A stretch of DNA of 64,000 nt, from contig NIVC01000130.1 in the NCBI GenBank assembly GCA_002269645.1, positions 62,001 through 126,000 on the forward strand, written 5' to 3'. A model generated the notes under the pieces. The model saw only the letters and a list, made by a program, of their open reading frames with translations, had not been told where the DNA came from and did not search any database. Shown here in pieces: positions 415 to 33,752 of the stretch. The stretch is from Macrostomum lignano (Eukaryota). How positions within the stretch are numbered: the first letter of the stretch is position 1; each line of letters opens with the position of its first letter. The position numbers and the translations under genes are program-made.

Positions 415-455
415 TCCTTGATAAAAACGGCAGTCTCGCCAATTGTCTCTTCCAG

Positions 456-974
456 GTGACATTCGAGTGCCTGTACACCCTTGTGGAGCACTGCGTCGAC
501 CGTATCGACCTGTTCACCTTCATCCAACACATCGAGGTCGGCCTAAAAGATGTGGCAGACATTCGAATCCTGTGCTTCCTCATCCTTGAGCGGCTGTGCA
601 GCCGAGCGCCCAGCACGGTATTTGCCGCCACCGAGGCCCTCGTGCCAGCGATTCGGGCCACATTTGCCGAGAAATCCACGGAGAAATCCGTTAGAGCTGA
701 ATTAGACAAACAAATCGAACTGAAACACGCTGCTATGCGAGTGTTCCTGTGCTTAGCTAAACTTGGCGAATCCAAGGCTGTTCAGGATTGCACCCAGATG
801 ATCATGTCCGATAGAGGCGGCCTAACTGTCTCGGCCGCCCAGCAGCACCAGCTGCAGCTGCATCAGTCGGGCCAGCAGGGTTCACAGCAGCAAGCGGCCG
901 CATCGTCTACGACTGTTGTTAGCCTCTACCAGCTCTACCTTACCGTTGAAAAAGAGTTGGCCAGTCAGAATTGA
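456..974 (+). CDS. CAND1: Terminal exon of cullin-associated NEDD8-dissociated protein 1 (gene starts upstream of the window)
   Basis: Acceptor tcttccag|GTG at 455/456. TFECLYTLVEHCVDRIDLFTFIQHIEVGLKDVADIRILCFLIL...KSVRAELDKQIELKHAAMR matches the remembered CAND1/TIP120 C-terminus ([38 protein letters not shown]...KQEFEKQDELKRSAMR). Confidence 0.88.
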   Translation: MTFECLYTLVEHCVDRIDLFTFIQHIEVGLKDVADIRILCFLILERLCSRAPSTVFAATEALVPAIRATFAEKSTEKSVRAELDKQIELKHAAMRVFLCLAKLGESKAVQDCTQMIMSDRGGLTVSAAQQHQLQLHQSGQQGSQQQAAASSTTVVSLYQLYLTVEKELASQN

Positions 975-5481: not shown

Positions 5482-8400
5482 ATGGCGCCGTCTCCGAAAA
5501 TTCACGTCAACATCGTGGTCATTGGCCATGTCGACTCTGGAAAGTCTACTTCCACTGGCCATCTGATCTACAAGTGCGGTGGCATTGACAAGAGAACTAT
5601 CGAGAAGTACGAGAAGGAGGCACAGGAGCTTGGCAAAGGCTCGTTCAAGTACGCATGGGTGCTCGACAAGCTGAAGGCCGAGCGTGAGCGCGGTATCACC
5701 ATTGACATTGCTCTGTGGAAGTTCGAGACTGAGAAGTACTACGTCACTGTCATCGACGCCCCTGGCCACAGGGACTTTATCAAGAACATGATCACCGGTA
5801 CCTCTCAGGCCGACTGCGCCGTGCTGATCATTGCTGCTGGTGTTGGCGAGTTCGAGGCCGGTATCTCGAAGAACGGTCAGACCCGCGAGCACGCTCTGCT
5901 GGCTTACACCCTCGGTGTAAAGCAGATGATCATCGGCGTAAACAAGATGGACTCGACCGAGCCGCCGTACTCCGAGGCCCGCTACAACGAAATCAAGAAG
6001 GAAGTGTCCGCCTACATCAAGAAGGTCGGCTACAACCCGGATGCGGTCGCTTTTGTGCCCATCTCAGGCTGGCACGGAGACAACATGATCGAGGAGAGCA
6101 ACAACATGTCCTGGTTCAAGGGTTGGAGCATCAAGCGCAAGCTGCCCGGCAAGAAGGAGGAGACCACCACCGAGGGCAAGACCCTGATCGAAGCTCTGGA
6201 CGCGATCATTCCGCCAGAGCGACCCACCGACAAGCCGCTACGTCTGCCGCTACAGGACGTGTACAAGATCGGCGGTATCGGCACCGTTCCGGTCGGTCGC
6301 GTCGAGACTGGCATCTTGAAGCCCGGCATGGTCGTGACCTTCGCGCCACAGATTCTCTCGACTGAGGTCAAGTCCGTCGAAATGCACCACGAGCAGCTGG
6401 CCGAGGCTGTACCTGGTGACAACGTAGGCTTCAATGTGAAAAACGTGTCTGTGAAGGACATCCGTCGTGGCAACGTGTGTGGTGACTCCAAGAACGACCC
6501 GCCTAAGGAGACTGGAGACTTTGTTGCTCAGGTGATTATTCCGATGATTTTATTTTTTTCGTTGCAATTGCAACATTTATTATCATTGTCACCACACTTA
6601 AAGACACGGCGGCCATGTCTTCAATCCAAAAGCATATAGAAACGGCGGCCGTGCCTCTAAGTCTAATAGTGATTAGGTCCATACTTATAGTCGTTATAGA
6701 TACAGCCGGGCCGCCGTGTCTGTAATATTAGAGGTTAGAGCTTATAGACCCGGCGGCCGTATCTGTACTATATAGAATGAGTCTCACACTGGAGACAGCA
6801 GCCGTTCTTAATATTGAATGAGTTCACTTTTAAAGACGCAGAGGTAGGCCGTGTTCCTAATATACAATCCACTTGACATTAAAGACAGCGGTGGTCTCTT
6901 TTATTGTCAAAATTTAAAGCAACGGTACCATGTGTCTTTACACAGCGGACGTGCCTATAAGCTCCAATCTGGGTTTATTTTTTGTGCGTAGTGTGCGTAT
7001 GCACCTTAAATTTTAAAATTGCACCTTGAAATTAAAATGTAGGTGCGGTTTAGGTGCAGTCTCAACCTATTTTTCTATTAAAGCCTCATTCGCACTGCCT
7101 TAAAATAAGAAAAAAGAGAAATTGCACTTTGAGCCTTAAATTTGCACCATGAAAGTGAGCATAGGGTGCGATTTTGCACCTTGTCTCTGGCGAAAAGGAA
7201 AACCCTGGCTCCAACATTATAGACACGGAAGCCGTTTCTATAAGTAGTCAGTTTATAGTAAGGTATGTTATTTAATTATTAAATAAAATTTAAAATGACT
7301 TAAAAACTTGAAACTTGTATTATATTTATAGCTTCTAATACCATTATACTGCTTGATTATAGCTATAATCAATTACATTATTTGATTTCCTTTTAAAAAC
7401 TTGGGGTCTGGCTAGTTGATTTGACCAGTTAACCTGGTCTGATCCTAGCCTTTGCAGTTTTTTGCTTAGTATAAGTAATTTCATATATTAAGCAACTCTG
7501 CAGACTCCTAAATTATTGCAGCTGCAGTATCTATTTGCTGCGCTCAGGCCTGTATATTCCTTTTCCTCTTTAGCCTTATATGGGCTATGAATAGTTGGAT
7601 AAACCATGCAGGTCACAGCTCACAAATCATTGAATGTTTACTAAAAATGCGAGGGTAGGGGGCAGATATCCACTGAAGGATAGAAAGGATCATACTGCGT
7701 GTTTTATTACCCCATTTACAAAATTTGGTTTAAAGTGGTGTAATGGTGTTCCGCCGTAGCTACGGCTACAGGATCCTACAGAAAATGTGGTAAAATTGGT
7801 GTCTGCCTAAGGCAGCTACAGAAAGTTATACCTAATATAGTGCAGCAAAACACTACACTAGCATATTCTGTTAACTGTTATTAATGAGAAAAGGCTCCAT
7901 CTATATACTACTAAGTGATTTCAGTAGTAGAAAATGTAATCTTACAAAGGCAATCGAGTGTTTCAGTTTCTACCTTATTTGCAGTCATTTAAATACCAGT
8001 ATATCTTATTCAGAGTGTTTAATTTCACGAGACAAACAAAACTATGGCTACGGGAATACAGTAAATATTGGAGTCCCTACGGCCACGGAATAGGGAAAAC
8101 TGGAATAAGCCGTAGTTTTGCTTACGGCCACGGCACATTAACCCCTAAGTCTTGTTTTGTATATCATTGAAAAAAGTATAAAAACTTTGTATTTCTTTGT
8201 GACTCCGCAGGTCATCGTACTGAACCACCCCGGCCAGATCCAGCCCGGCTACGCTCCCGTGCTCGACTGCCACACCGCTCACATCGCCTGCAAGTTCAGC
8301 GAGTTCCTCAAGAAGATCGACAGGCGCAGCGGCAAAGAGCTCGAGGACTCTCCGAAGATCCTGAAGAGCGGCGACGCCGCCATGATCAAACTGATCCCCT

Positions 8401-8570
8401 CCAAGGCCATGTGCGTGGAGCCCTTCGCCCAGTACCCGCCTCTGGGTCGCTTCGCCGTGCGCGACATGAAGCAGACCGTGGCCGTGGGCGTCATCAAGGA
8501 GGTCAACAAGAAGATCACGGAGGGCAAGGCGACCAAGGCTGCTCAGAAGGCTACTGGCAAGAAAAAGTGA
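5482..8570 (+). CDS. EEF1A: Elongation factor 1-alpha, copy 1; exons 5482-6531 and 8211-8570; 469 aa
   Basis: [17 protein letters not shown] and NKMD GTPase motifs. GT-AG intron 6532-8210 (CAG|gtgatt...ccgcag|GTC). AATAAA near 8642. Confidence 0.98.
6590..6960. repeat. Degenerate ~40-50-bp tandem repeat (agacacggcggccgtgtct core) in the EF1A copy 1 intron
   Basis: The core recurs about 8 times and resumes at ~7220 after a MITE insertion. Confidence 0.65.
6969..7207. mobile_element. hAT-like MITE
   Basis: Ends ctgggttt...aaaccctg, flanked by an 8-bp target duplication gctccaat (6961-6968) / gctccaac (7208-7215). Confidence 0.65.
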
Positions 8571-10349
8571 ATGACCCGCACCTGTGTAATTCTGGAGGCA
8601 TTGCAGTTAACTGAACTATTTGGAATGCTCGATTGTCGATCAATAAAGAATGCGAAGTTAAAGTTGCGAGACTTGTTTGTTTGGAAATTCCTGTCTCGAT
8701 TTGTTTAATTTCTTTGTGTTTCAATCTATTTGTTGCTAGTATTTCCTGACTAAAGAGCGACGTAAAGCCCGAACTTCACAAATGTATGGGCACAAGTATA
8801 GGCTGCATAATGAAGTAGCCAGTTAATTGCAACGAATTAACAGTTCATTTATTCATATTACAAGGGGCGGGAACTGAAAAGTTGGGAGGCTGTACTTTTT
8901 AATAACATTGCTTCAAGCATTACTTGAAGCAGTATTTACCACAGACTAAGTGACTGCAAAGGAACACTAACTCGTTCTGTAAGTCCCTAAATTTGATGTC
9001 TTCTGTTCAATTTCAAACAATAACTTGGAATCTCTGGGTAAAATTCTGAATCATACAATTGTCAGTATCAGTACATGCTAACAACTGAGTGTACATGCCA
9101 ACTGTGGGCTAGTATCAGCGAAATGTACTATTGTTAATACAAAATTGTTGATTCCTCTTAGCTAAAGAGAATAATCTGCAATCCAGGTTTTAGCATACTT
9201 GTATACAAAATCCTAGCCTGCTGTGCTTCTACAGGATCAACCGTGGATTTTGCTGAATCATTCTGCACCGAACTGCTGGTTTTTGGCCCGACCGAAGCTT
9301 TAATTTGTTCATTGCTCTGCTGCCCCACTGAGTGAGCGCCCTTCACTCCCACTCCCCTTTCCTAAACCAACGCATGCACAACCTTTGCACCGCAGCGGGC
9401 CATGCAACCCCACGCAAGCTACTGCAGCAGCTAGACTCCATGCCGCTTTCCGTTAGTACGAGTATAGTCTGCATGCAGTGCAATCGAAACCATGCATACC
9501 ACATTTTCTATTCAGAAATTTACACGATATTCACGTGTTTAATATAAGTGTTTGTCTAGTGTTGAAAATTATAATTAACGCGTAAATTAGTTGTTCGTCC
9601 ATGCTTGCAGAAATCAATTCCGGCCGAACATTAAGCCAAGTTTTTAAATTCGTTTTGAATTTTTTACAATTTGTCAACAAAAATGGTGTGCGCCATTCGT
9701 TACGCAAAATTTTTGCAAGGTACATGTACTATTTGTATGATTTGCAAATTTGTATTGCGAGAGAGATCGATCGAGAGCTGTAAAGATTCATATTATACTG
9801 TAACAGAAGAATATTGTGCGTCACGCGGGGTGAGAGTAATTTGGGTGAGTCAGCGCGGGTTCCACGCCCTGGCTGCAGCTGGGTCTGTGGCTCAACGCTT
9901 TCAGTCAGTATTAGGAAACAATTTGCCTGCCGAAGCAAAAATAGGCGCGCATTTTTCTACATGTCTACTATATACACTATATATATAGTAGCGCAATTAG
10001 GATTTTTTATTAACATTATTTTTCCTCCCGTTGAACTACCATTCACCCCCCTGACAATTTTTTGCTGTGCGGGAACGGAGCAACGAAGGCACACGAAATT
10101 CAAAAACAACTTTTTGTTGCGCACCTTCTCAAACAAGAATTAGGTCGCCAGCCCTCCGGACCGTCAAGATATTCGACGATTCTGCCAGAAGAAGGTCGGA
10201 TTTTTCCCATAAGCGCCACTAGTGTCAGTGCGCCAATCAGCACTGCGCCTCGGTGCAGCCTTGCCAAGCCTCCAAATTTCATCAGCATGTCGATCGCATG
10301 TGTCTGCATCAGCTCTGGCTTCGTTGGTCATGAGCCTTCACCCAGGCGG

Positions 10350-12039: not shown

Positions 12040-12600
12040 GTCTGGTGCCTGACGTTTGCGAGGACCTGCGACCTCCCAATGGACTTTACTGGGCTGCCTT
12101 CCGTTCCATGAGGGTTTTCCTGCAGTCCGAGGCCCTACCCGACCGCCAGAGGGCGGCGTTGTTCCTGGCGGTGATCGAGACCGTCCTGTTGTACAACGCC
12201 GAGACCTGGACGCTGACAGATTTGCTCGAACAGCTGGTCGATGCGGCGCACGCTGGCCTGCTGTGCGCCGCCTTCAAGATCGGCTACAAGCGAGTCACCA
12301 TGCAATGCGGCACTCTATCGCCGAATCGGCCTGTCGCATCCCAGCAAACTTTTGCGCCGTCGGCGACTCCAGCTGGCAGGCCATATTATCCGAGCCGAGT
12401 CCTGCTGCCCACAGCCGGTGCAGGAGGTGCTGCTGCTGACGCTGCAGGCACCCTATCGGCGGGGGCAGGCGCGCACTCGGCGTTTCGTCGACTGCCTTCT
12501 GGATGATGCCGGCGCCCCGGACACTGCCGGCGGTGCGGCCTACATTCGCGCCCAGCCCTTGAAACGTGCCTTGTGAAGTCTGCTGACTGACTGACAACGT
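12040..12600 (+). mobile_element. 5'-truncated, frameshifted RTE-clade non-LTR retrotransposon, 3' fragment
   Basis: VLLYNAETWTLT and RRLQLAGHIIR...RRGQARTRRFVD are typical post-RT RTE motifs, here in two frames. Followed by ctgactgactgac and a (ttg)n tract. Confidence 0.8.
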
Positions 12601-13202: not shown

Positions 13203-13230
13203 TATATAAAGCGTGTGATATTTCAGTGCA
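13203..13230 (+). promoter_or_regulatory. Putative TATA box and initiator of the CUB-domain gene
   Basis: TATATAAA at 13203 and TTCAGT at ~13222, about 110-130 bp before the predicted ATG. Confidence 0.35.
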
Positions 13231-13330: not shown

Positions 13331-16300
13331 ATGTCAGCGACAAAGGGTAAGGGAGACTGGACTGCATCAGTTCCAGAGACTGGACTGCATCAGTTCCAGA
13401 GACTGGACTGCATCAGTTCCAGAGACTGGACTGCATCAGTTCCAGAGACTGGACTGCATCAGTTCCAGAGACTGGACTGCATCAGTTCCAGAGACTGGAC
13501 TGCATCAGTTCCAGAGACTGGACTGCATCAGTTCCAGAGACTGGACTGCATCAGTTCCAGAGACTGGACTGCATCAGTTCCAGAGACTGGACTGCATCAG
13601 TTCCAGAGACTGGACTGCATCAGTTCCAGAGACTGGACTGCATCAGTTCCAGAGACTGGACTGCATCAGTTCCAGAGACTGGACTGCATCAGTTCCAGAG
13701 ACTGGACTGCATCAGTTCCAGAGACTGGACTGCATCAGTTCCAGAGACTGGACTGCATCAGTTCCAGAGACTGGACTGCATCAGTTCCAGAGACTGGACT
13801 GCATCAGTTCCAGAGACTGGACTGCATCAGTTCCAGAGACTGGATAGACTCAAGCGGTATATTGTAATATACATGTACTATCAAGCCTTCTTCAGGTAAA
13901 GCTGCATTCGAAAATCGTTACTTGCTGATTTCCAGCTATCCGTGTCGTCACTGTTCTGCTGTTGCTAAGCTGCGCGTTTCACCGCTGTAGCAGTCAGGAA
14001 AGTGAGTCATATCCGCCATGGGGTTGAGTAGGCAGTGCATGTACAGTTACTAGTTAGGCGTGTTTTCAGAGTTTCACTTTGAAGACTTCTCTATTGGTCT
14101 CTGGGGGTCTCTGGGAGCTAAACTTTGGTCTTTGAGGGTCAACTGGAGGTCAATCGGAAACAGGTCTTTGAGGGTAAACTTAGTGGATCAGAAAGTCCCT
14201 GGGTCAACTGGGGGGGCGGGTCAAATCGGGGTCAAGATACGTTTCGAGGTTACATTCCATTGCTTACAATGTCTCGCAGACTGCAGCAGACTGCAGAATG
14301 TGTCAGCAACTGAGGCCGGAGGGGACATTGTCAGTCACGCCAATGTCGGACTGTCCGCCTACCACAGCGGCGCTCACTGCTCCTGGTTCATTCAAGCTCC
14401 AGCTGGCAAAATCATTGTGGCCTGGTTCACCTTTCTTGACCTGGAAGAGTCGAGCGAACAAAACGACAGCGTCTCTCTGTTTGACGGGTCCCCGAAGCCT
14501 TTCAAATTGCTAAAGGTGGTCAATAAACTTCAGCATACCGGCTTCATTTGGCCGCCAAGATCTTGGCCGGAGCCTCCCATCTCTCCGAGATTCGTTTCCA
14601 GCTCGAACCTGATGACTGTGAAGTTCCGGTCGGGAAGCGGAAGCACAGACCGGAAAGGATTCAGACTACACTATGAGCTCAGCAGCTTCCGTGAGTCAGG
14701 GTGCCGCCATTCTATAGTTGTCAGGGTGGCGCCATTCTATAGTTTTCAGGGTGGCGCCATTCTATAGTTTTCAGGGTGGCGCCATTCTATAGTTGTCAGG
14801 GTAGCGCCATTCTATAGTTGTCAGGGTAGCGCCATTCTATAGTTGTCAGGGTGGCGCCATTCTATAGTTGTCAGGGTGGCGCCAATCTATAGTTTTCAGG
14901 GTGGCGCCATTCTATAGTTTTCAGGGTGGCGCCATTCTATAGTTGTCAGGGTAGCGCCATTCTATAGTTGTCAGGGTAGCGCCATTCTATAGTTGTCAGG
15001 GTAGCGCCATTCTATAGTTGTCAGGGTGGCGCCATTCTATAGTTGTCAGGGTAGCGCCAATCTATAGTTGTCAGGGTAGCGCCATTCTATAGTTTTCAGG
15101 GTGGCGCCATTCTATAGTTGTCAGGGTAGCGCCATTCTATAGTTGTCAGGGTAGCGCCATTCTATAGTTGTCAGGGTAGCGCCATTCTATAGTTGTCAGG
15201 GTGGCGCCATTCTATACTTGTCAGGGTGGCGCCATTCTATAGTTGTCAGGGTAGCGCCATTCTATAGTTGTCAGGGTGGCGCCATTCTATAGTTGTCAGG
15301 GTAGCGCCATTCTATAGTTGTCAGGGTAGCGCCATTCTATAGTTGTCAGGGTAGCGCCATTCTATAGTTGTCAGGGTGGCGCCATTCTATAGTTGTCAGG
15401 GTGGCGCCATTCTATAGTTGTCAGGGTAGCGCCATTCTATAGTTGTCAGGGTGGCGCCATTCTATAGTTGTCAGGGTAGCGCCATTCTATAGTTGTCAGG
15501 GTAGCGCCATTCTATAGTTGTCAGGGTAGCGCCATTCTATAGTTGTCAGGGTGGCGCCATTCTATAGTTGTCAGGGTAGCGCCATTCTATAGTTGTCAGG
15601 GTGGCGCCATTCTATAGTTGTCAGGGTAGCGCCATTCTATAGTTGGGTGGCGCCATTCTATAGTTGTCAAGGTGGTGCCATTCAATAGTTGTCAGGGTGG
15701 CGCCTTTTTATACTTGTCAGGGTGGCGCCATTCTATAGTTGTCAGGGTAGCGCCATTCTATAGTTGTCAGGGTGGCGCCATTCTATACTTGTCAGGGTGG
15801 CGCCATTCTATAGTTGTCAATGTTGGCGCCGTTCGATCTATAGTTGTCAGGGTGGCGCCGTTCGATCTATAGTTGTCAGGGTGGCGCCGTTCGATCTATA
15901 GTTGTCAGGGTGGCGCCATTCTATAGTTCCCAATATGGTATCGTACTCAACCGTCTCCTCAGCCAATGCCAGCGCCTGCGGCTCCATCAGCTGGAACTCT
16001 AACGATACTGAAAAGTCAGGAGAACTCGTCAGTCACAGGGAATACAACGGATTAGTGCCCTACGCTCGGAGCATGTCGTGCAGATGGGACCTGCCTGCAG
16101 ATGGTTCAACTGTAGCCATCGTGACAGTGGTGAATTTGTCTCTTTCTCAGAACGACTCTATTTACATAATGGGCGCCATACCTTCTAAATATCGAACCAA
16201 TTTGTATTATCAAGTGAAGACCTGGGCGGCTGTGAGCAATGCTGAGCTGCAGCCAAGATCCAAGATTTTGATTTTGTTTAAATCGACTGGAAGACATCGA

Positions 16301-19300
16301 TCAACCGGATTTTGGCTGAAAATTGGTTTGTAGCTGGTGATATTCCCATTACCCTCACTGTCTACACTCTCAACCTGTCACTCTACCCTCACTGTCTACA
16401 CTCTCAACCTGTCACTCTACCCTCACTGTCTGCACTCTCAACCTGTCACTCTACCCTCACTGTCTACACTCTCAATCTGTCACTCTACCCTCACTGTCTA
16501 CACTCTCAACCTGTCACTCTACCCTCACTGTCTACACTCTCAATCTGTCACTCTACCCTCACTGTCTACACTCTCAACCTGTCACTCTACCCTCACTGTC
16601 TACACTCGCAACCTGTCACTCTACCCTCACTGTCTACACTCTCAACCTGTCACTCTACCCTCACTGTCTACACTCTCAACCTGTCACTCTACCCTCACTG
16701 TCTACACTCTCAACCTGTCACTCTTCCCTCACTGTCTACACTCTCAACCTGTCACTCTACCCTCACTGTCTACACTCTCAACCTGTCACTCTACCCTCAC
16801 TGTCTACACTCTCAACCTGTCACTCTACCCTCACTGTCTGCACTCTCAATCTGTCACTCTACCCTCACTGTCTACACTCGCAACCTGTCACTCTACCCTC
16901 ACTGTATACACTCTCAACCTGTCACTCTACCCTCACTGTCTGCACTCTCAATCTGTCACTCTACCCTCACTGTCTACACTCGCAACCTGTCACTCTACCC
17001 TCACTGTCTACACTCGCAACCTGTCACTCTACCCTCACTGTCTGCACTCTCAACCTGTCACTCTACCCTCACTGTCTGCACTCTCAATCTGTCACTCTAC
17101 CCTCACTGTCTACACTCTCAACCTGTCACTCTACCCTCACTGTCTACACTCTCAATCTGTCACTCTACCCTCACTGTCTACACTCTCAATCTGTCACTCT
17201 ACCCTCACTGTCTACACTCTCAATCTGTCACTCTACCCTCACTGTCTACACTCTCAATCTGTCACTCTACCCTCACTGTCTGCACTCTCAACCTGTCACT
17301 CTACCCTCACTGTCTACACTCTCAATCTGTCACTCTACCCTCACTGTCTACACTCTCAACCTGTCACTCTACCCTCACTGTCTGCACTCTCAATCTGTCA
17401 CTCTACCCTCACTGTCTACACTCTCAACCTGTCACTCTACCCTCACTGTCTACACTCTCAACCTGTCACTCTACCCTCACTGTCTACACTCTCAACCTGT
17501 CACTCTACCCTCACTGTCTACACTCTCAATCTGTCACTCTACCCTCACTGTCTGCACTCTCAACCTGTCACTCTACCCTCACTGTCTGCACTCTCAATCT
17601 GTCACTCTACCCTCACTGTCTACACTCTCAACCTGTCACTCTACCCTCACTGTCTACACTCTCAATCTGTCACTCTACCCTCACTGTCTACACTCTCAAC
17701 CTGTCACTCTACCCTCACTGTCTGCACTCTCAACCTGTCACTCTACCCTCACTGTCTACACTCTCAATCTGTCACTCTACCCTCACTGTCTACACTCTCA
17801 ACCTGTCACTCTACCCTCACTGTCTGCACTCTCAATCTGTCACTCTACCCTCACTGTCTACACTCTCAACCTGTCACTCTACCCTCACTGTCTACACTCT
17901 CAATCTGTCACTCTACCCTCACTGTCTGCACTCTCAACCTGTCACTCTACCCTCACTGTCTACACTCTCAACCTGTCACTCTACCCTCACTGTCTACACT
18001 CTCAACCTGTCACTCTACCCTCACTGTCTACACTCTCAACCTGTCACTCTACCCTCACTGTCTACACTCTCAACCTGTCACTCTACCCTCACTGTCTACA
18101 CTCTCAACCTGTCACTCTACCCTCACTGTCTGCACTCTCAACCTGTCACTCTACCCTCACTGTCTGCACTCTCAATCTGTCACTCTACCCTCACTGTCTA
18201 CACTCTCAACCTGTCACTCTACCCTCACTGTCTGCACTCTCAACCTGTCACTCTACCCTCACTGTCTACACTCTCAACCTGTCACTCTACCCTCACTGTC
18301 TACACTCTCAATCTGTCACTCTACCCTCACTGTCTACACTCTCAACCTGTCACTCTACCCTCACTGTCTACACTCTCAATCTGTCACTCTACCCTCACTG
18401 TCTACACTCTCAACCTGTCACTCTACCCTCACTGTCTACACTCTCAACCTGTCACTCTACCCTCACTGTCTACACTCTCAACCTGTCACTCTACCCTCAC
18501 TGTCTACACTCTCAACCTGTCACTCTACCCTCACTGTCTACACTCTCAACCTGTCACTCTACCCTCACTGTCTGCACTCTCAACCTGTCACTCTACCCTC
18601 ACTGTCTACACTCTCAACCTGTCACTCTACCCTCACTGTCTAAACTCTCAACCTGTCACTCTACTCTCACTGTCTACACTCTCACCCTGTCACTCTACCC
18701 CCACTTTCACTCTAACTTTAACTCTAATGTGATCATCAAGCACACAAAACCGTTAATACAGTTTATTACAGGTCGCATATAATCTCTCACAAAGTTGGCG
18801 AATTCAACGGCTCGAACGCAACGCGGTCCATCTGGTTCATCGAGGCCGCAGCTGGGAATGGCGTCCGACTCCAGCTGACATACTGTGGACTTCGTCCAGG
18901 AGATTCCATCAAGGTTTATGACGAGCGTTATTCTAAAACGATAGCTCGAATCAATGGGACAACTTGCAAAAAGTTCTTGGAAACGTTCGAATCGCGCTCA
19001 AATTTTGTGAGAGTCATCTTCGATCGAGGCGACAGAGGCACCGACAGAACGTTCGGCATGCAGTACGACACTACTCAGGAAAGTAAGTTGCTTTATTGGA
19101 GTTGAAATTTCTGCTTTTAAAGACGTCAATTACTCGTACTTTTTGATTGGCCAAGCATACGGTGTACTCGTATAGGCCCTTGCAAGGTCACCAATGGTAT
19201 TCTAAAAGGTGTTGGGATCTATGGTCAAGGACCACTGTCCTGTACGTCCTGTGGTACAACAGGACGTAAAACTCGAAGATCGTGTAATTTTTAGAGGCCG

Positions 19301-22226
19301 ATTTCCTGGAAAAAATACACTAGCTGGGAAGATAGCAAAAAATATAGATTTTTTTCATCACAAAATCAATGATTGCATTTGATCTTGTGCATACAGGGAA
19401 GATTTTCAGTCATTTAATTTAGTGTTAATAAAAATATAAGTAAAATAAATAAATATAAGAGCTATAATATAAATTAAAAAATATTCAAAAAAACTTTTTC
19501 CTATCTCCGAAGTGTATTTTTCCTGGAAATCGGCCTCCAAAAATTACACGAACTTTGAGTTTTACGTCCTGTTGTACTACAATGTTCGTTACTCACGGTG
19601 TGAGTATGTTTTTCATACGATATGACAATTTTTCGAAAGGTATTCCTAGAAAACCATGTCTAAGATATTTCTAGGAAAGCAACGGGTCGAAACCGAGCTT
19701 GTTTCCTTGAATAGGAGGAGCTTATAAGTTTAGCCGGAAGGCCAAATTCTGCAAAGCTCAGTGCACGCGATCAAGTTGTCCTTGATGCCAGCCAGTTACC
19801 AGAAGCCTGACTGTTTAATTCACCTTTTAGTCAAATACTGTTTCGGCTATGTCATTAAGGAGGCTAGCAGTGACGTCGGAGAAATCTCTAGTCACAGAGA
19901 AGCCGGCTTAACCAATTACTTGAACCATATGCGATGTTTCTGGGAGCTGAATGCAAATATCAACGAAATTGTTGTTGCCTGGTTTTTGCACATGGATCTG
20001 CAAAACAATTCCGGCGATTTTATTCGAATCTACGATGGCTGGCATGTGAACAAGGAGCATTTGATAGTCAACATTAGTCTGGAAGGCCACGCTGGTTGGA
20101 TCTCGCCGATATTTGCCACAACTTACCCTCGAATGGTGGCATTCTTTGAAACCGATGCTGCAGTAACGCGCACCGGGTTCCGGCTGCAGTGGAAGGCCAG
20201 GAGACCGCGTGAGTGCAGTTTGGTCAAGTCAGCCTTGCATTGTGCGTAGGTAAAGGAGTTAGAACTATGAGAGATGTGAGAGATCGGGAGGAGAGAGAGG
20301 TGAGATGTGAGAGATCGGGAGGAGAGAGAGGTGAGATGTGAGAGATCGGGAGGAGAGAGAGGTGAGATGTGAGAGATCGGGAGGAGAGAGGTCAGATGTG
20401 AGAGATCGGGAGGAGAGAGGTCAGATGTGAGAGATCGGGAGGAGAGAGAGGTGAGATGTGAGAGATCGGGAGGAGAGAGAGGTGAGATGTGAGAGATCGG
20501 GAGGAGAGAGAGGTGAGATGTGAGAGATCGGGAAGAGAGAGGTGAGATGTGAGAGATCGGGAAGAGAGAGGTGAGTGATCGGGAGGAGAGAGGTGGTACG
20601 GTGAGAGAATAGCACAGAGATTGAGGAGTTAGGATTCAATGCATGATCATTAAGTGCAGTGCCCGTCAAAAAAGCATGTAGGCTTGGCACTTACAGACTT
20701 TGTGTTGATTTTCAGTGACCAGCAACAGGTGCGGATCTGTGGTGTGGTCGGACGCCTCAAACTCATCGGGCGAGCTGGCCAGTCACGAAGGATACGACGG
20801 GTTCACGCCGCATCCGGGAAATTTGAGCTGCGTGTTGTACCTGCCCGGACTAAGTTACAGCAGAGGTCTGGTTTACGTAACCCTGGTCAGCGCCTCCCTT
20901 GCTGAGGGCGACTGCTTGCACGTGACCTCATCCGGAATTGTCTCTGGGAAACCCATTCACCTGTGCGGCTGGGTAGCCGTCAAGAATTTGACCCTGGTGG
21001 GCCCGGTTAACATTGTTGTGCGCTACAGCTCTTACAGCAAGTACAAGTCTGCTGGCTTTTTGATTCGCTTCCATAGCAGGATGGACGGTGAGTCTTGGGG
21101 TTGTTAGGCACTCACTGAAGCTGTCTGGGGGTTGTCAGACGTTCACTGAAGCTGTCTGGGGGATGTCAGGCGCTCACTAAAGGTGTCTGGGGGTTTTCAG
21201 GCGTTCACTGAAGCTGTCTGGGGGATGTCAGGCGCTCACTAAAGGTGTCTGGGGGTTGTCAGACGTTCACTGAAGCTGTCTGGGGGATGTCAGGCGCTCA
21301 CTAAAGGTGTATGGGGGTTTTCAGGCGCTCACTGAAGCTGTCTGGGGTTGTCAGGCGTTCACTTAAGCTGTCTGGGGGTTGTCAGGCGTTCACTGAAGCT
21401 GTCTGGGGGTTGTCAGGCGTTCACTGAAGCTGTCTGGGGGTTGTCAGGCGCTCACTGAGTGTCGAGAGGTGTCAGGCGCCAATATCAAGCATTTCACCAA
21501 AGTACAAATGTAACTATTAGTGACATATGAATTTCATCATTAGACACAACGCCGGAAGCTACAACTCGCACACCGGAAGCTACAACTCGCACACCGGAAG
21601 CTACAACTCGCACACCGGAAGCTACAACTCGCACACCGGAAGCTACAACTCGCACACCGGAAGCTACAACTCGCACACCGGAAGCTACAACTCGCACACC
21701 GGAAGCTACAACTCGCACACCGGAAGCTACAACTCGCACGCCGGAAGCTACAACTCGCACACCGGAAGCTACAACTCGCACACCGGAAGCTACAACTCGC
21801 ACACCGGAAGCTACAACTCGCACACCGGAAGCTACAACTCGCACACCGGAAGCTACAACTCGCACACCGGAAGCTACAACTCGCACGCCGGAAGCTACAA
21901 CTCGCACACCGGAAGCTACAACTCGCACACCGGAAGCTACAACTCGCACACCGGAAGCTACAACTCGCACACCGGAAGCTACAACTCGCACACCGGAAGC
22001 TACAACTCGCACACCGGAAGCTACAACTCGCACGCCGGAAGCTACAACTCGCACACCGGAAGCCACAGCCTGCCCTTCGACTCCTCCGTTAAAACCTAAC
22101 ATTTTGCACCGGCTACTCAACTCGTGCGTGAGTAGTCTCGAGTCCTGCTCTAAAGTCTTAAGCTCGTGCTCCAGCAGACTGGAATCGTGCGTTAAATCCA
22201 CGTCATGGGACTCAAACGGGAATTAA
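13331..22226 (+). CDS. Secreted protein, 869 aa: signal peptide + 5 CUB domains + (PEATTRT)x24 + Cys-heptad C-terminus. Exons 13331-13346, 13936-14001, 14280-14690, 15963-16325, 18762-19082, 19831-20208, 20716-21087, 21544-22226
   Basis: All seven introns are GT-AG and phase 1, and the summed CDS (2610 nt) is open. The N-terminus MSATKAIRVVTVLLLLSCAFHRCSS looks like a signal peptide. Each middle exon has a CUB pattern (G.I.S, C.W.I, D.v.iyDG, v.F.s...GF...Y). Confidence 0.82.
13352..13845. repeat. 23-bp minisatellite (gactggactgcatcagttccaga), intron 1 of the CUB gene
   Basis: About 21 perfect copies beginning a few bases after the donor. Confidence 0.97.
14695..15928. repeat. 25-bp minisatellite (gtcagggtggcgccattctatagtt), CUB gene intron 3
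   Basis: About 49 copies filling almost the whole intron. Confidence 0.97.
16350..18715. repeat. 34-bp minisatellite (accctcactgtctacactctcaacctgtcactct), CUB gene intron 4
   Basis: About 69 copies. Confidence 0.97.
19260..19571. mobile_element. MITE with ~70-bp terminal inverted repeats
   Basis: caggacgtaaaactc.aag.tcgtgtaattttt.gaggccgattt is inverted at 19500-19571. Flanks tggtacaa/ttgtacta fit either a degenerate 8-bp TSD or a TA TSD. Confidence 0.75.
20265..20600. repeat. GA-rich ~29-31-bp minisatellite (gagatgtgagagatcgggaggagagagaggt)
   Basis: About 10 copies in CUB gene intron 6. Confidence 0.9.
21095..21478. repeat. ~31-bp minisatellite (aggcgttcactgaagctgtctgggggttgtc)
   Basis: About 12 copies in CUB gene intron 7. 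Confidence 0.9.
21552..22064 (+). repeat. Coding 21-bp repeat (ccggaagctacaactcgcaca) encoding PEATTRT x24
   Basis: In frame after a phase-1 acceptor at 21543/21544. The only variant (ACA>ACG) is synonymous in this frame. Confidence 0.82.
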
Positions 22227-23631
22227 GCATCAATCAACAAGGGAAATTGATCGCTATTCTCTCATCAACACTCTCGATGGCATATAAAGACAAGATTGAT
22301 CGCATATCAATAAAATCGCATACCGAAGCTCATTCGTTTTTTAATCGCCCCAAGTCGCTCAAAATGTTTATTATTTCACTAAAAACATGAAGAATTTATT
22401 TTCATTTATCGGAATTCAATATTTCACTTTGTCACTAAAATGGACACAAGAAACTGTAACACTATATGCCACAGTGACTTATTGTTGATCAGAGTTGATA
22501 CAAGTCCTTGTCATTGCTGTAATCTAGAAACCTTACATAATGCTACATAATTTCTTTTAAACTTCCAAGATTTGACAAAAGCCAGCCAGATTTCATTGCT
22601 GTTTATTTATTATGGAAACACATTATCAAATATACTTCGTTCCGAATTCGCGAATTTCTAAAACGAAAAAACGAATATTATGTCTTCATTTTAATACAAA
22701 ATACAAAGTTTTGCGCCACCTTAAACTCCACTGCAGAGTTTTTTACCTGTATAATTTAATATTCACTCAACCAAATTATTGAAACAATTGTTAAAAAGTT
22801 AAAACAAGTTTGTATTACTTCATGCTAAGAAGTTTAATTTAGAAAAAGTTATATGTTATTTAATAAATGCCTTTAAAAGCTAAATTAATAATAATTTTTA
22901 TAATAAAAATCTCTAGCATTCTTTTCTGCTCAATAGATGATTGTGAAGTATAAAATAAAGCTAAAATCACTGCTTTCAACTTTCATGAAAAAATAAGGGA
23001 TTTAGTTACGTGAAACTGCACCAAATATAAGGTTTTAAGGATTAGCTAATTATTTATAATTCGGACTTTGTCTAAAGAGCAACGTTTAATTTACGCTCGT
23101 AAGAAGTCTGGAAGCTTTAGACTTAGTGAACATTTTCTGTGATACTAACATAAATTAATTTGAATGAAATAAATGGACCAGCTTTTTATATTTCTGATTT
23201 TAGCTGACAACAACTAATTCGCCAAAAGTTATTTTATAAAGCAGCTACTGTAAATCAGATAAAAACTTTGAGAAACGGGCCTTCGGCCATATTTGCGACA
23301 TCGCATTTCAAATATCGTACGTCATAGAACTATCGCACCACTTACTAGAATAACAAATTTAAACGAAATATTTTTTTATACTTTACTAAGACTCTACAGA
23401 AAATTCCTGCTAGTAATATTCGATCAAAGTTTTAAAAAAATCTATAGGTATTTTTCAGACATAGATTTCGTCAATGTGCTATAAAGTGATGAAATTGATT
23501 GCAATTAGGCGACTGATGGGTTATAAATATTGTACGCTGTCGTCAGCAAAAAAGGCCATTAAATCAGACATTCGATTATGATTTCCTGACGATATAGCTT
23601 TAATTGCTACACAAAAATTTGAAAGCCGCAG

Positions 23632-25116
23632 ATGCCGTCGGATAAGGTTCACATTAGCATTGTGGTCATTGGCCATGTCGACTCTGGAAAGTCTACTTCC
23701 ACTGGCCATCTGATCTACAAGTGCGGTGGCATTGACAAGAGAACTATCGAGAAGTACGAGAAGGAGGCACAGGAGCTTGGCAAAGGCTCGTTCAAGTACG
23801 CATGGGTGCTCGACAAGCTGAAGGCCGAGCGTGAGCGCGGTATCACCATTGACATTGCTTTGTGGAAGTTCGAGATTGAGAAGTACTACGTCACTGTCAT
23901 CGACGCCCCTGGCCACAGGGACTTTATCAAGAACATGATCACCGGTACCTCTCAGGCCGACTGCGCCGTGCTGATCATTGCTGCTGGTGTTGGCGAGTTC
24001 GAGGCCGGTATCTCGAAGAACGGTCAGACCCGCGAGCACGCTCTGCTGGCTTACACCCTCGGTGTAAAGCAGATGATCATCGGCGTGAACAAGATGGACT
24101 CGACCGAGCCGCCGTACTCCGAGGCCCGCTACAACGAAATCAAGAAGGAAGTGTCCGCCTACATCAAGAAGGTCGGCTACAACCCGGATGCGGTCGCTTT
24201 TGTGCCCATCTCTGGCTGGCACGGAGACAACATGATCGAGGAGAGCAACAACATGTCCTGGTTCAAGGGATGGAGCATCAAGCGCAAGCTGCCCGGCAAG
24301 AAGGAGGAGACCACCACCGAGGGCAAGACCCTGATCGAAGCTCTGGACGCGATCATTCCGCCAGAGCGACCCACCGATAAGCCGCTACGTCTGCCTCTAC
24401 AGGACGTGTACAAGATCGGCGGTATCGGCACCGTTCCGGTCGGTCGCATCGAGACTGGCATCTTGAAGCCCGGCATGGTCGTGACCTTCGCGCCACAGAT
24501 TCTCTCGACTGAGGTCAAGTCCGTCGAAATGCACCACGTGCAAATGTCGGAAGCCGTTCCTGGCGACAATGTAGGCTTCAATGTGAAGAACGTGTCTGTG
24601 AAGGACATCCGTCGTGGCAACGTGTGCGGTGACTCCAAGAACGACCCGCCTAAGGAGACTGGAGACTTCGTTGCCCAGGTAAAGGCACACTGTTGCTAGG
24701 GACCTCAAGTAACCAATAAAACGTTATGTTCATTTACATAACTTGTTCCGCAGGTCATCGTGCTGAACCACCCCGGCCAGATCCAGCCCGGCTACGCTCC
24801 CGTGCTCGACTGCCACACCGCTCACATCGCCTGCAAGTTCAGCGAGTTCCTCAAGAAGATCGACAGGCGCAGCGGCAAGGAGCTCGAGGACTCTCCGAAG
24901 ATCCTGAAGAGCGGCGACGCCGCCATGATCAAACTGATCCCCTCCAAGGCCATGTGCGTGGAGCCCTTCGCCCAGTACCCGCCTCTGGGTCGCTTCGCCG
25001 TGCGCGACATGAAGCAGACCGTGGCCGTGGGCGTCATCAAGGAGGTCAACAAGAAGATCACGGAGGGCAAGGCGACCAAGGCTGCTCAGAAGGCCAGCGG
25101 TGGAAAGAAGAAATGA
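23632..25116 (+). CDS. EEF1A: Elongation factor 1-alpha, copy 2; exons 23632-24678 and 24754-25116; 469 aa
   Basis: Same motifs as copy 1. 75-bp GT-AG intron at the same codon position. AATAAA near 25257. Confidence 0.98.
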
Positions 25117-28452: not shown

Positions 28453-31400
28453 TCACAGTCCGCTCGTCAGCTCCTTGCCTGACCCATCCGAGTCGGAGCC
28501 ATCAGCGGCCACTAGCCTGCGCATCTCGTGCCGTTGAAGCCGCCATCGGCTTCTCAACCGACCGGCGCTCCTGCGCAAGCGACACAGCTTGGCAACCAGG
28601 CAGGCGTTGAGCAGGCAGCTGGCGGCCAGCACCGAGGGTAAGACGACCACCGCCCAGTTGATGGTCGACAGACGGCGTCTCACAATGAGCAGCAGATTGT
28701 AGGCTGGGGGGGGGGGAGTGAGGGAGAACTGCTCACTGCCAGCGCCTTCATATCCCTCATCTCAGCCATAGATAGCTAATCTCATTTCTCGAACCTTCTA
28801 ATCTTCTTAGAATCTTTAACTCTCACCCTTGAGAATCTCTAACTCCCACCCATGAGAATCTGCAATTCCCACCCTTGAGAACTTGAGAATCTGCAAATCC
28901 TACCCTTGAGAATCTGCAAATCCTACCCTTGAGAATCTGCAAATCCTACCCTTGAGAATCTGCAAATCCTACCCTTGAGAATCTGCAAATCCCACCCTTG
29001 AGAATCTGCAAATCCTACCCTTGAGAATCTGCAAATCCCACCCTTGAGAATCTGCAAATCCCACCCTTGAGAATCTGCAAATCCTACCCTTGAGAATCTG
29101 CAAATCCCACCCTTGAGAATCTGCAAATCCTACCCTTGAGAATCTGCAAATCCCACCCTTGAGAATCTGCAAATCCCACCCTTGAGAATCTGCAATTACC
29201 ACCCTTGAGAATCTGCAATTACCACCCTTGAGAATCTGCAAATCCCACCCTTGAGAATCTGCAAATCCCACTCTTGAGAATCTGCAATTATCACCCTTGA
29301 GAATCTGCAAATCCCACCCTTGAGAATCTGCAAATCCCACCCTTGAGAATCTGCAAATCCCACCCTTGAGAATCTGCAATTACCACCCTTGAGAATCTGC
29401 AATTACCACCCTTGAGAATCTGCAATTACCACCCTTGAGAATCTGCAATTACCACCCTTGAGAATCTGCAATTATCACCCTTGAGAATCTGCAAATCCCA
29501 CCCTTGAGAATCTGCAATTACCACCCTTGAGAATCTGCAATTATCACCCTTGAGAATCTGCAAATCCCACCCTTGAGAATCTGCAAATCCCACCCTTGAG
29601 AATCTGCAATTACCACCCTTGAGAATCTGCAATTATCACCCTTGAGAATCTGCAATTACCACCCTTGAGAATCTGCAATTACCACCCTTGAGAATCTGCA
29701 ATTACCACCCTTGAGAATCTGCAATTATCACCCTTGAGAATCTGCAAATCCCACCCTTGAGAATCTGCAAATCCCACCCTTGAGAATCTGCAAATCCCAC
29801 CCTTGAGAATCTGCAATTATCACCCTTGAGAATCTGCAATTATCACCCTTGAGAATCTGCAATTATCACCCTTGAGAATCTGCAATTATCACCCTTGAGA
29901 ATCTGCAATTATCACCCTTGAGAATCTCTAAATCCCACCCTTGAGAATCTCTAAATTCTACCCTTAAGAATCTCTAAATCCCACCCTTGAGAATCTCCAA
30001 ATCTCACCCGTAGAATCCCCATATCTCACCCCATAAAATCTCCATATCTCACCCCATAGAATCCCAATATCTCACCCCTTAGAATCTGCAAGTCTCACCC
30101 CTAGAATCCCCAAATCTCACCCCTAGAATCCCCATATCTCACCCCATAGAATCTCCACATCTCACCCCATAGAATCCCCAAATCTCACCCCTAGAATCCC
30201 CATATCTCACCCCATAGAATCCCCATATCTCACCCCATAGAATCCCCATATCTCACTCCTTAGAATCCCCATATCTCACTCCTTAGAATCTCCAAATCTA
30301 TCCCTAGAATCCCCAAATCTCACCCCATAGAATCCCCATATCTCACTCCTTAGAATCCCCATATCTCACTCCTTAGAATCTCCAAATCTATCCCTAGAAT
30401 CCCCAAATCTCACCCCTAGAATCCCCATATCTCACCCCTAGAATCCCCATATCTCACCCCATAGAATCTCCACATCTCACTCCTTAGAATCCCCATATCT
30501 CACTCCTTAGAATCCCCATATCTCACTCCTTAGAATCTCCAAATCTATCCCTAGAATCCCCAAATCTCACCCCTAGAATCCCCATATCTCACCTCATAGA
30601 ACTCCCAAATCTCACTTGATAGAGTCTACAAATCTCCCAAAAAACTGCCAATCTCATTGTCAGACAAACCTCCATTAGCGGTGAAGCCTTCGCCGCCGCC
30701 GCTGCCCAAGCAGGTGCCGTTGACGTGATGGCAGACTGCAGGCTCGCCGCCGTCTGGGCAGACGCAGACCCTGGCGCAGCCGGCCCCGTAGAAGCCGGGA
30801 GGGCAGCGGCTCTCGCACAGTCGGCCTCTGTAGCCGGGCGGGCAGTCGCAGTCACCGCTGACCGGGTGGCAGGACGGCTGGTAGCCCGGAGGGCTGTTCA
30901 AGCACCGGCACCTGGAGTGGCAGCCCCAACCGGTGTAACCGGGACGGCACCGGCATTCGCCTTGGAGGCATTGGCCGCCGATTGGGCTGCAGATTTCACC
31001 GTTGCAGATGCTGCCACGGCTGGCGTTGACGCACAGGATTGATGTGACCGGACGCTCGCAGGACCGGTGCGGGCTGTCCGCGGAGTCCGGGCTGGGAATT
31101 GGGGAGATTTTGGGATTCTTTGGTAGTGAGATTTGGAGATTCTAAGGGGTGAGATATGGGGATTCTATGGGGTGAGATATGGAGATTCTATGGGGTGAGA
31201 TATGGGGATTCTAGGGGTGAGATTTGGAGATTCTATGGGGTGAGATTTGCGGATTCTATGAGGTGAGATTTGGGGATTCTAGGGGTGAGATTTGGAGATT
31301 CTATGGGGTGAGATTTGCAGATTCTATGAGGTGAGATTTGGGGATTCCAGAGGTGAGATTTGGAGATTCTAGGGGTGAGATTAGGAGATTCTATGGGTTG

Positions 31401-33752
31401 AGATATGGGGATTCTATGGGGTGAGATATGGAGATTCTATGGGGTGAGATTTGCGGATTCTATGGGGTGAGATATGGGGATTCTATGGGGTGAGATATGG
31501 AGATTCTATGGGGTGAGATATGGGGATTCTATGGGGTGAGATATGGAGATTCTATGGGGTGAGATATGGGGATTCTAGGGGTGGGATTTGGGGATTCTAT
31601 GGGGTGAAATATGGGGATTCTAGGGGTGAGATTTGGAGATTCTATGGGGTGAGATATTGGGATTCTAGGGGTGAGATTTGGAGATACTAAGGGGTGAGAT
31701 TTAGGGATTCTAGGGGTGAGATTTGGCGATTCTAGGGGTGAGATATGGGAATTCTAGGGGTGAGATTAGGAGATTCTATGGGTTGAGATATGGGGATTCT
31801 ATGGGGTGAGATATGGAGATTCTATGGGGTGAGATTTGCGGATTCTATGGGGTGAGATATGGGGATTCTATGGGGTGAGATATGGAGATTCTATGGGGTG
31901 AGATATGGGGATTCTATGGGGTGAGATATGGAGATTCTATGGGGTGAGATATGGGGATTCTAGGGGTGAGATTTGGAGATACTAAGGGGTGAGATTTAGG
32001 GATTCTAGGGGTGAGATTTGGCGATTTAATAAGTGAGATTTTTTTTATTTTATGGGGTGAGATTTGGAGATTCTATGGGGTGATATTTGGAGATTCTATG
32101 GGGTGATATTTGGAGATTCTTAATTTCTTTGGAATGCTATTTGGACTTTCTGCTAGGATTTTACAATAGTTCAGTTCCCAAATTTGTTGCTAAAAATAGA
32201 TTAGGGAAGAGAGGCATAGGGCGCAACGCTTCAGCTAGTCTGCTGCTAGTGCAATAAAAATGTTGAAATGTTGTTGCAATCATTTTTAATGCCATCACAA
32301 ATTGCGACATTAATTTGCTAACCAATAAGTAGACAAGTGAGTAGCGCGAATGAATATTTTCAAAGAATTTTTTCTTGGCAGTTTAGTTACAAAATTTTTA
32401 TCATATTTAGAAGACATAAAAAACAATTATTCATCATTCACTCACCACCTGTCTGACGGACTGCCAACTACAGTGCCATTCACGACCAGGGTTGACGAGC
32501 CGCCGCCGTCCAGGTTGACGGCGTTGTACACGCCAAGGTCAATTAGCAGATCGGCCAAGTCGAACAGATTTATGCTGTTTGATGGGGCGAAAAGGAATTC
32601 GAGTCATGGAGGAGTTCGGGAAAAAAAACTGCGTGCAATTAAAGGGGCTCCCTTGTCGAATAATGAAGGGGAATGGTACGAAGGGAATTTCATTAGACAG
32701 TCGGAAAGGGAATTACAGTAGGGAATCGATAGGGAATGACAGTAGGGAATCGATGGTGAATTACAATACGGAATCGGTGGGGAATTACACTACAAAAAAT
32801 TGATGGGGAATTACAGTAGGGAACCGATGGGGAATTAGATTTAGGGAATCAGTAGGAAATAACAGTAGGTAATCGATGTTAAATCGATAGGGAATTACAG
32901 TAAGGAATCGATGGGAAATCGATAGGGAATTACAGTAGGTAATCGATGGAGAATTACAGGAGGGAATCATTAGGGAATTACAGTAGGGAATCGATAGGGA
33001 ATCAATAGAGAATTACAGTAGGTAATCGATAGGGAATCGATGGATAATTACAGTAGGGAATCAGTAGGGAATTACAGTAGGGAATCGATAGGGAATCAAT
33101 GGGGAATTACAGTAGGCAATCGATGGGAAATCGATGGGTAATTACAGTAGGGAATCGATGGAGAATTACAGTTGGGAATCGGTAGGGAATCTCAATAGGA
33201 AAATAATTTTTACAAGTCGTAAAGGCCTCATTAATATCAGTATTTGAACAAATACAAGCAAATTGATGATGATATGCTCTAGGTACTCTACTTATAAACT
33301 TTATAAGTAGCAACATTAGAAAATGGCTCTAATTTTGCTCTTTAAACAAAACAATTATCATGCTATGAAATTAAGTAATCATAATTGAATAAATAATTTC
33401 ACTTGCTCACCCGGAAACATCGGTTTTGCCAACAATTTTAATCAGAACGAGGTCGCCGTTACGCAATTGACCAACCGCGGAGCGAGCGGATACCACCGTG
33501 GCGAATCGTCTCAAACTGCCGGTTGTTTGAGTTTCAGAGCACTCGGCCTTGATGCTCTGCTCGACAAACTGGGTCATGGAATTGTGGTGGACGGTGGAGC
33601 TAAGCAGGGAATTTAATTGGGAATTTCTAGGTCCAGAATCGGGTGTACACAGTCACTCACGTTGCTGCCATTGCGCACAAGCCAAATAGCTCCACCCACT
33701 AGTTGATGATACATCCCAGACAATAGTTGATCCTCAGTGAGATAGCTGCAAT

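Follow-up and report, generated by a model that had tools for sequence, protein, structure and literature searches.

A putative gene for a secreted multi-CUB protein with an in-frame minisatellite stalk and a Leu/Cys heptad tail in Macrostomum lignano

Several described systems resemble parts of the protein reported here. Cubilin carries 27 CUB and 8 EGF domains and is known to multimerise through a short coiled coil, which is located at its N terminus. In COMP, the matrilins and the collectin necks a short terminal coiled coil multimerises the heads and is fixed by interchain disulfides; the cysteines of such coiled coils flank the heptads and are not known to occupy four consecutive d positions. 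Gel-forming mucins carry VWD, C8, TIL and cystine-knot domains. Spermadhesins, found in mammals only, are secreted proteins consisting of a single CUB domain. DMBT1 (gp-340) and SSC5D are secreted glycoproteins that combine arrays of small binding domains with Ser/Thr/Pro-rich mucin-like regions, and DMBT1 is described as containing CUB domains (PMC3100851). Successive rings of Cys within a coiled coil have been engineered into the F protein of respiratory syncytial virus (RSV) as a 'cysteine zipper' (PMC4476739). Here we describe a gene from Macrostomum lignano found in a stretch of 64 000 nucleotides (nt) of contig NIVC01000130.1 (positions 62,001 to 126,000 of the forward strand, assembly GCA_002269645.1). 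This whole stretch is called the window, and its numbering is used throughout. The gene, located at 13331–22226 on the + strand, is predicted to encode a protein of 869 amino acids (aa) with a signal peptide, five CUB domains, a stalk of PEATTRT repeats and a tail with regularly spaced Leu and Cys.

The window protein has in common with cubilin the array of many tandem CUB domains, but it contains five of them and no EGF domain (Pfam); its predicted helix is C-terminal, and its mucin-like stalk and Cys ladder have no counterpart in cubilin. With DMBT1/gp-340 and SSC5D it shares the combination of a binding-domain array with a Ser/Thr/Pro-rich region, while SRCR and ZP domains were not found in it by Pfam. 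A database protein query with the last exon (exon 8) returned matches in composition only, and the best of them, to an SSC5D-like protein, is compositional and not homologous. The likeness to spermadhesins is that CUB is the only domain type of a secreted product, and the spermadhesin entry 1spp is among the structural matches of CUB domain 5; in contrast, spermadhesins have neither stalk nor tail, and the likeness is no evidence for a seminal role of the window protein. None of the domains typical of gel-forming mucins named above was detected in it by Pfam, and its tail has no family match. The parallel with COMP, the matrilins and the collectin necks concerns an oligomerisation that we propose for the window protein. 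Unlike the man-made zipper of RSV F, the tail is a natural sequence.

A first-pass annotation of this DNA had proposed an unannotated gene whose eight exons, separated by satellite-filled introns and visible only as fragments in the track of open reading frames (ORFs), join in phase into 869 codons for a secreted protein with five CUB domains and 24 PEATTRT repeats, lacking a transmembrane segment and a protease domain. Re-analysis bore out this description: the ORF track does hold fragments only, and an independent rebuild by three-frame translation and inspection of exon boundaries gave eight + strand exons totalling 2610 nt (869 codons and TAA), identical in length and in the sequence of the tail. 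Exon 1 (13331–13346) contains the ATG plus 5 codons (MSATK) and ends at the donor AAAGG/GTAAGG in phase 1. Exon 2 (13936–14001, phase 1-1) encodes the rest of the signal peptide, AIRVVTVLLLLSCAFHRCSSQE. Each of the next five exons carries one CUB domain: exon 3 (14280–14690; domain 1, type A), exon 4 (15963–16325; domain 2, type B), exon 5 (18762–19082; domain 3, with a shortened N terminus), exon 6 (19831–20208; domain 4, type A) and exon 7 (20716–21087; domain 5, type B, in which the Cys of both disulfide pairs of the CUB fold are present). The terminal exon 8 (21544–22226) follows the acceptor tcatcattag/AC, in the required phase, and encodes the stalk, the tail and the TAA stop.

All seven introns are of the GT..AG type and in phase 1, with 14 of 14 splice dinucleotides intact, and the 869 codons are free of stops and frameshifts. 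If phases were arbitrary, the six further introns would match the first by chance with a probability of about (1/3)^6. One junction is ambiguous: the donor 16329/16330 of exon 4 together with the acceptor 18771/18772 of exon 5 is equally in phase, and its use replaces VYYR by GL to give 867 aa. Exons 1 and 2 encode MSATKAIRVVTVLLLLSCAFHRCSSQE, the sole strongly hydrophobic stretch of the protein (Kyte–Doolittle maximum of 1.66 at residues 2–20). Thus, by hydropathy, the single peak is the N-terminal signal peptide and there is no transmembrane segment; Pfam finds CUB domains only, and no protease domain. The product is predicted to be secreted. A candidate TATA box, TATATAAA (13203–13210), is located 121 nt 5′ of the ATG, and a candidate poly(A) signal, AATAAA (22309–22314), is located 82 nt 3′ of the stop, both on the + strand and both read from the sequence with putative function. 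We regard it as probable that the eight-exon gene is real and that it is transcribed and expressed essentially as modelled.

The five CUB domains were identified in different ways. Domains 1, 3 and 4 score above the Pfam gathering cut-off for CUB (PF00431, 21.4 bits) with 37.9, 24.3 and 32.8 bits (E-values 2.4e-9, 4.2e-5 and 9.2e-8, respectively). Domains 2 and 5 have no direct Pfam CUB match. They were assigned to the family since they share 30% identity with each other and 32–42% with the second CUB domain of M. lignano paralogs, where Pfam does call CUB. Against the second domain of the paralog A0A1I8G727, in which Pfam sees two CUB stretches, the values are 36–38% (36% for domain 2). Furthermore, a profile of the type-B domains picks the CUB domain of ADGRG6 among Protein Data Bank (PDB) sequences (E=0.008). 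Domain 5, the sole CUB domain modelled with AlphaFold2, gave an all-beta structure with a predicted local distance difference test score (pLDDT) of 82 and a predicted template modelling score (pTM) of 0.79. When this model was used in a Foldseek search of the PDB, ranks 1–13 were all CUB-containing entries (TM-score 0.56–0.69), with the CUB domains of PCPE-1, TSG-6, C1r, NRP2 (neuropilin-2), MASP and spermadhesin (1spp) among the top matches.

The first Cys pair of the CUB fold (C1–C2) is present in domains 1, 2, 4 and 5, and the second (C3–C4) in domains 3 and 5 only; partial loss of disulfide pairs is common among CUB domains. The canonical pairs take up 12 cysteines. The CUB region also contains 15 N-glycosylation sequons.

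The five exon translations were combined into a profile for a family search. The profile matches 2836 multi-CUB proteins, among which cubilin-like proteins predominate. The closest sequences per domain come from M. lignano itself: A0A1I8G727, A0A267DLF5 (PAA50045.1, BOX15_Mlig010673g2), A0A1I8G0Q1 and A0A1I8GDA1, with per-domain identities of about 27–42%. CUB 1 is 43% identical to CUB 1 of A0A1I8G727, and BLASTP of CUB 1+2 and of CUB 4+5 against this protein yields 35–38% identity over ∼250 aa with E-values of ∼5e-39. In the relatives as in the window gene, CUB domains of type A and of type B take turns along the protein and an invariant G-x-I-x-SH motif is present, while the PEATTRT array and the Leu/Cys heptad tail are present in the window gene and absent from the relatives.

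We fetched 24 kb of the genomic locus of PAA50045.1 (designated L001). As in the window gene, L001 has one CUB domain per phase-1 exon, each donor following one extra nucleotide; unlike in the window gene, its introns are short and there is not a single tandem repeat in the 24 kb. Downstream, in our splice reading, a phase 1-1 S/T-rich stalk exon is followed by a transmembrane exon, ...LSAIFLVVSAAVVAVVIYKVRK..., with a hydropathy of 2.56. The end of A0A1I8GDA1 has a similar order, ∼110 S/T/P-rich residues and then a hydrophobic stretch. Judged by this one locus and the end of A0A1I8GDA1, the family looks like one of type I membrane proteins, in which a CUB array is followed by a stalk and a transmembrane helix. 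In the window gene no such anchor is seen after the stalk, and the stalk exon ends in the Leu/Cys helix instead. A hidden transmembrane exon was sought at 21088–23640, before the next gene; the only candidate, an AT-rich 17-residue stretch at 22879 interrupted by Lys, was rejected. The first-pass annotation had not recognised the architecture of the protein. This has to be revised: the gene belongs, as a diverged representative, to a Macrostomum-specific multi-CUB family, and an S/T/P-rich tail occurs in at least one relative. The literature that we searched contains no paper on Macrostomum CUB proteins and no functional characterisation of these relatives. As a separate observation, the PAA50045.1 model looks truncated at both ends, with upstream CUB exons and downstream stalk and transmembrane exons in phase at 8636–10270 and 14484–14970 of L001.

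The stalk is encoded by an array of exactly 24 units of 21 bp (21552–22055, + strand), each translated as PEATTRT. Twenty-one units are identical, and the other three have a single A>G change, which falls on the third base of the last Thr codon and is synonymous in this frame. With three Thr and one Pro per seven residues the unit qualifies as the Pro/Thr/Ser-rich repeat of a mucin-like (PTS) domain, and the ∼170-aa stalk would be O-glycosylated. No further copy of the 21-mer is present in the window. The array appears to be young and homogeneous, and its length probably differs between individuals. Past its end only the coding frame remains open, for 52 further codons, and stops close the other two frames directly behind it.

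The tail contains an amphipathic helix of 35 residues, PNILHRLLNSCVSSLESCSKVLSSCSSRLESCVKS (22095–22199, + strand), as predicted by AlphaFold2, which places a single helix over PNILHR...CVKS with a block-mean pLDDT of 86–94 over the core. Most of this segment consists of four 21-bp units (22116–22199, + strand) translated as LNSCVSS, LESCSKV, LSSCSSR and LESCVKS. In heptad register the a positions read L,L,L,L and the d positions L,C,C,C,C, so that, in the model, hydrophobic a and d residues fall within a helix as expected for a coiled coil; the hydrophobic moment is maximal at 100 degrees, a value equalled by 1 of 5000 shuffles. The first-pass annotation had pointed to four Cys exactly seven residues apart on one face of a helix. 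The positions (837, 844, 851 and 858, each with a Leu three positions ahead) agree with this, and the predicted helix, the register and the amphipathic moment favour the one-face geometry. The exact spacing follows from the four tandem 21-bp units, however, and was overstated as an independent sign. Searches with the tail, by sequence in the PDB and by Foldseek, gave no matches, as is expected for a single helix.

Compared among themselves, the four units show 62% nucleotide identity at the first and at the second codon position and 33% at the third. Amino acid identity is 24/42 in the coding frame vs 11/42 and 7/42 in the other two frames, which contain stops, and all four units have retained Leu, encoded by CTC, CTC, TTA and CTG in turn. 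The units may thus have diverged in a protein-like manner, a signal of marginal strength (p=0.05 in an exact column test). None of the five cysteines of the tail, C819 and the four at d positions, has an intradomain partner; being odd in number, they would leave at least one intermolecular disulfide or free thiol. Association of the tail into a coiled coil linked by disulfides is possible, though less likely than not, and we propose it tentatively. The first-pass annotation had put forward such a locked structure, together with a candidate role in mucus, adhesive, cocoon or seminal material; both are conjectural. It was also considered whether the tail has arisen from the end of the PEATTRT minisatellite by frame shift and decay; this could not be established. 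A gapped alignment was non-significant, and in an ungapped register test one of 5000 mononucleotide shuffles reached the 38/84 matches between tail and array, as did 5% of trials under a null keeping the tail's own periodicity. A perfect GTGAGT donor consensus is present inside the tail coding sequence (22128–22133), with a codon boundary right after LLNSC; it could act as an alternative phase-0 donor, and no partner exon for it was found downstream.

The CUB gene is situated between two intact tandem EF-1alpha genes, both on the + strand: copy 1 (5482–6531 and 8211–8570, with an intron of 1679 nt) and copy 2 (23632–24678 and 24754–25116, with an intron of 75 nt). The intron interrupts both copies at the same codon. 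In a set of 5.8 billion proteins the sole match to the modelled protein is UniProt A0A1I8GGZ6 of M. lignano, which is named 'Elongation factor 1-alpha'. This 961-aa entry is a chimeric model, made of EF-1alpha, then 77 residues similar to exon 5 of the CUB gene, then EF-1alpha again; exon 5 is 86% identical over 77 aa to its residues 454–530. Since the order of the EF-1alpha copies and their copy-specific residues agree, the window represents either the A0A1I8GGZ6 locus of M. lignano or a duplicate that has diverged from it. The gene can therefore be called unannotated in the sense that its database trace is limited to one exon, its own or that of a diverged copy, within a chimeric EF-1alpha model. 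According to Wudarski et al. (2017, PMC5730564), 15% of the M. lignano genome is tandem and simple repeat, and transcripts that overlapped repeat annotations did not enter its GenBank annotation. It is plausible that the annotation is missing because introns and part of the coding sequence of the gene are tandem repeats.

Our preferred reading is that the gene is functional and specifies a secreted, multivalent and heavily glycosylated CUB protein of 869 aa, with a stalk derived from an in-frame minisatellite and a tail helix that self-associates or cross-links covalently; taken as a whole, this reading has about even confidence. The ligands of the CUB array would be proteins or glycans, the stalk would be O-glycosylated and serve as an extended spacer, and C819 and the four d-position cysteines would join chains by disulfides, for which a parallel coiled coil is the simplest arrangement. 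The outcome would be covalent multimers or a cross-linked secreted matrix in place of a cell-surface receptor, the Leu/Cys helix having taken the place of the family's membrane anchor. A bolder form of the proposal, quite improbable in its entirety, makes the tail a natural 'cysteine zipper', a short parallel coiled coil in which the four successive d-layers and C819 make rings of interchain disulfides that covalently lock two to four chains. Bundles of five-CUB heads would then be carried on O-glycosylated stalks of polymorphic length, and the replacement of the transmembrane anchor would have adapted the protein to mucus, glue, egg coat or ejaculate.

Several observations weigh against the reading of a functional gene with a self-associating tail, and they are gathered here and in the next paragraph together with the alternatives to which they lend themselves. 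Exon 8 appears from its sequence to be the least secure part of the gene. Its array, 98% homogeneous, matches the satellites of the nearby introns in uniformity, and no stop interrupts it in any forward frame or in one of the reverse frames, so that openness alone is no proof of coding. The exon 7–8 junction, the PEATTRT array and the tail are present in no database protein searched, and the pyrimidine tract of the acceptor is only modest. The gene could thus be real with exon 8 unused: the 21-bp array would be non-coding, the tail an untranslated repeat remnant, and the protein would end after CUB 5, e.g. as ...HSRMDGESWGC in intron 7, where read-through meets a stop after 6 codons. We find this unlikely in view of the period of the array, the only one among the six arrays of the gene that is divisible by three, and of the in-phase acceptor just 8 nt 5′ of it. 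The sole variant of the array is synonymous, one frame only stays open beyond it, third positions of the tail are relaxed with Leu kept via different codons, AATAAA is present 3′ of the stop, and the paralogs, too, have an S/T/P-rich region behind the last CUB domain. Two further adverse points concern the CUB exons. Both exon 4 donors are weak (the one at 16325/16326 reads GTTTGT), and the identity of just 86% to the sole comparable database exon may reflect fast evolution or relaxed constraint. That identity would also fit a locus that is silent or in decay, duplicated from a multi-CUB gene with a membrane anchor. Such a copy would have lost its transmembrane exon, had its introns filled with satellites and be neither expressed nor functional any more. 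Extensive recent duplication in M. lignano (PMC5730564), the transmembrane exon and the repeat-free 24 kb of L001, neither property being shared by the window copy, and the N-terminal truncation of CUB 3 all speak for such a fate. Still, with 869 codons over eight exons uninterrupted, every splice dinucleotide intact, CUB disulfide pairs kept in part, and a signal peptide, a TATA-like box and AATAAA all present, decay of the locus is very improbable.

The remaining adverse points bear on the tail. It is rich in Ser (12 in 29 residues), a poor helix-forming composition, and the AlphaFold2 run was a single-sequence, monomeric one; the codon-position signal is marginal, as stated above; and comparison of the tail with the stalks, tails and transmembrane regions of the paralogs revealed nothing beyond composition, which gives no sign of conservation. 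Arguably, the protein could be made with a tail that is no homo-oligomerising coiled coil, its cysteines pairing within the chain, cross-linking heterotypically into a secreted matrix or binding metal as thiolates. Heavy metals are bound by designed three-stranded coiled coils that have Cys at a or d positions. The tail is, besides, a four-fold 21-bp tandem repeat of four to five heptads only, similar in sequence to no solved structure. These features have to be set against the recurrence of Leu at a and Cys at d in four of four units, which suits a hydrophobic seam, with the Leu surviving synonymous codon changes; against the helix, which is predicted with confidence; and against the five unpaired cysteines, which need at least one intermolecular bond or a free thiol. 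On this balance a tail of the non-coiled-coil kind seems somewhat unlikely.

If the reading of a functional secreted glycoprotein is right and its tail does form interchain disulfides, the engineered cysteine zippers would have a natural counterpart in this four-heptad ladder of Leu(a) and Cys(d). The gene also suggests a route from a family of membrane-anchored multi-CUB receptors to a soluble derivative, the stalk being gained by expansion of an in-frame minisatellite. Current understanding is not overturned by these results. Their relevance is to Macrostomum secretions, such as those of adhesion, mucus and seminal fluid, and to genome annotation, in which a complete 869-codon gene is publicly visible through one exon only, its own or a diverged copy's.

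The description of the introns as satellite-filled is justified: of 6286 intronic bases 4775 (76%) are tandem repeat, and five of the seven introns consist to 60–97% of a private minisatellite. These are a 23-bp repeat in intron 1 (13353–13844; 21.4 copies with 100% matches, 84% of the intron), a 25-bp repeat in intron 3 (14695–15928; 49 copies, 97%), a 34-bp repeat in intron 4 (16350–18705; 69 copies, 97%), a 31-bp repeat in intron 6 (20271–20575; 10 copies, 60%) and a 31-bp repeat in intron 7 (21092–21479; 12.6 copies, 85%). Each intronic array begins 4–62 nt past its donor site. Tandem repeats make up 23.6% of the window. The same 28-bp satellite is found at 1–414 and, 34 kb apart and in opposite orientation, at 34106–34483 (consensus 27/28, by eye), and the adjacent 23-bp arrays at 28882–30580 and 31104–32120 are reverse-complementary to each other (17/23).

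An AT-rich spacer of 1.4 kb (22227–23631) separates the stop of the CUB gene from the ATG of the second EF-1alpha copy. Transgenes in M. lignano are by standard practice driven by a 1.3 kb EF-1alpha promoter (PMC5730564); if it is derived from copy 2, it would start almost at the poly(A) signal of the CUB gene. Just upstream of the gene, overlapping ORFs on the + strand (12045–12576, ...LFLAVIETVLLYNAETWTLT...) resemble, by eye, the C-terminal part of a reverse transcriptase and suggest a retrotransposon fragment; they have no Pfam match at E<=0.001. Elsewhere in the window, an open frame at 30–974 (+) matches Pfam TIP120 (CAND1-type, E=3e-26) amid 28-bp and 30-bp satellites at 1–414 and 1089–1805. 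An exon-like ORF at 46988–47512 (−) contains a TLDc domain (E=3e-10), and a fragment of a Mos1/mariner-type transposase is present at 58502–59179 (−), with HTH_48 (E=4e-20) and a partial DDE domain.

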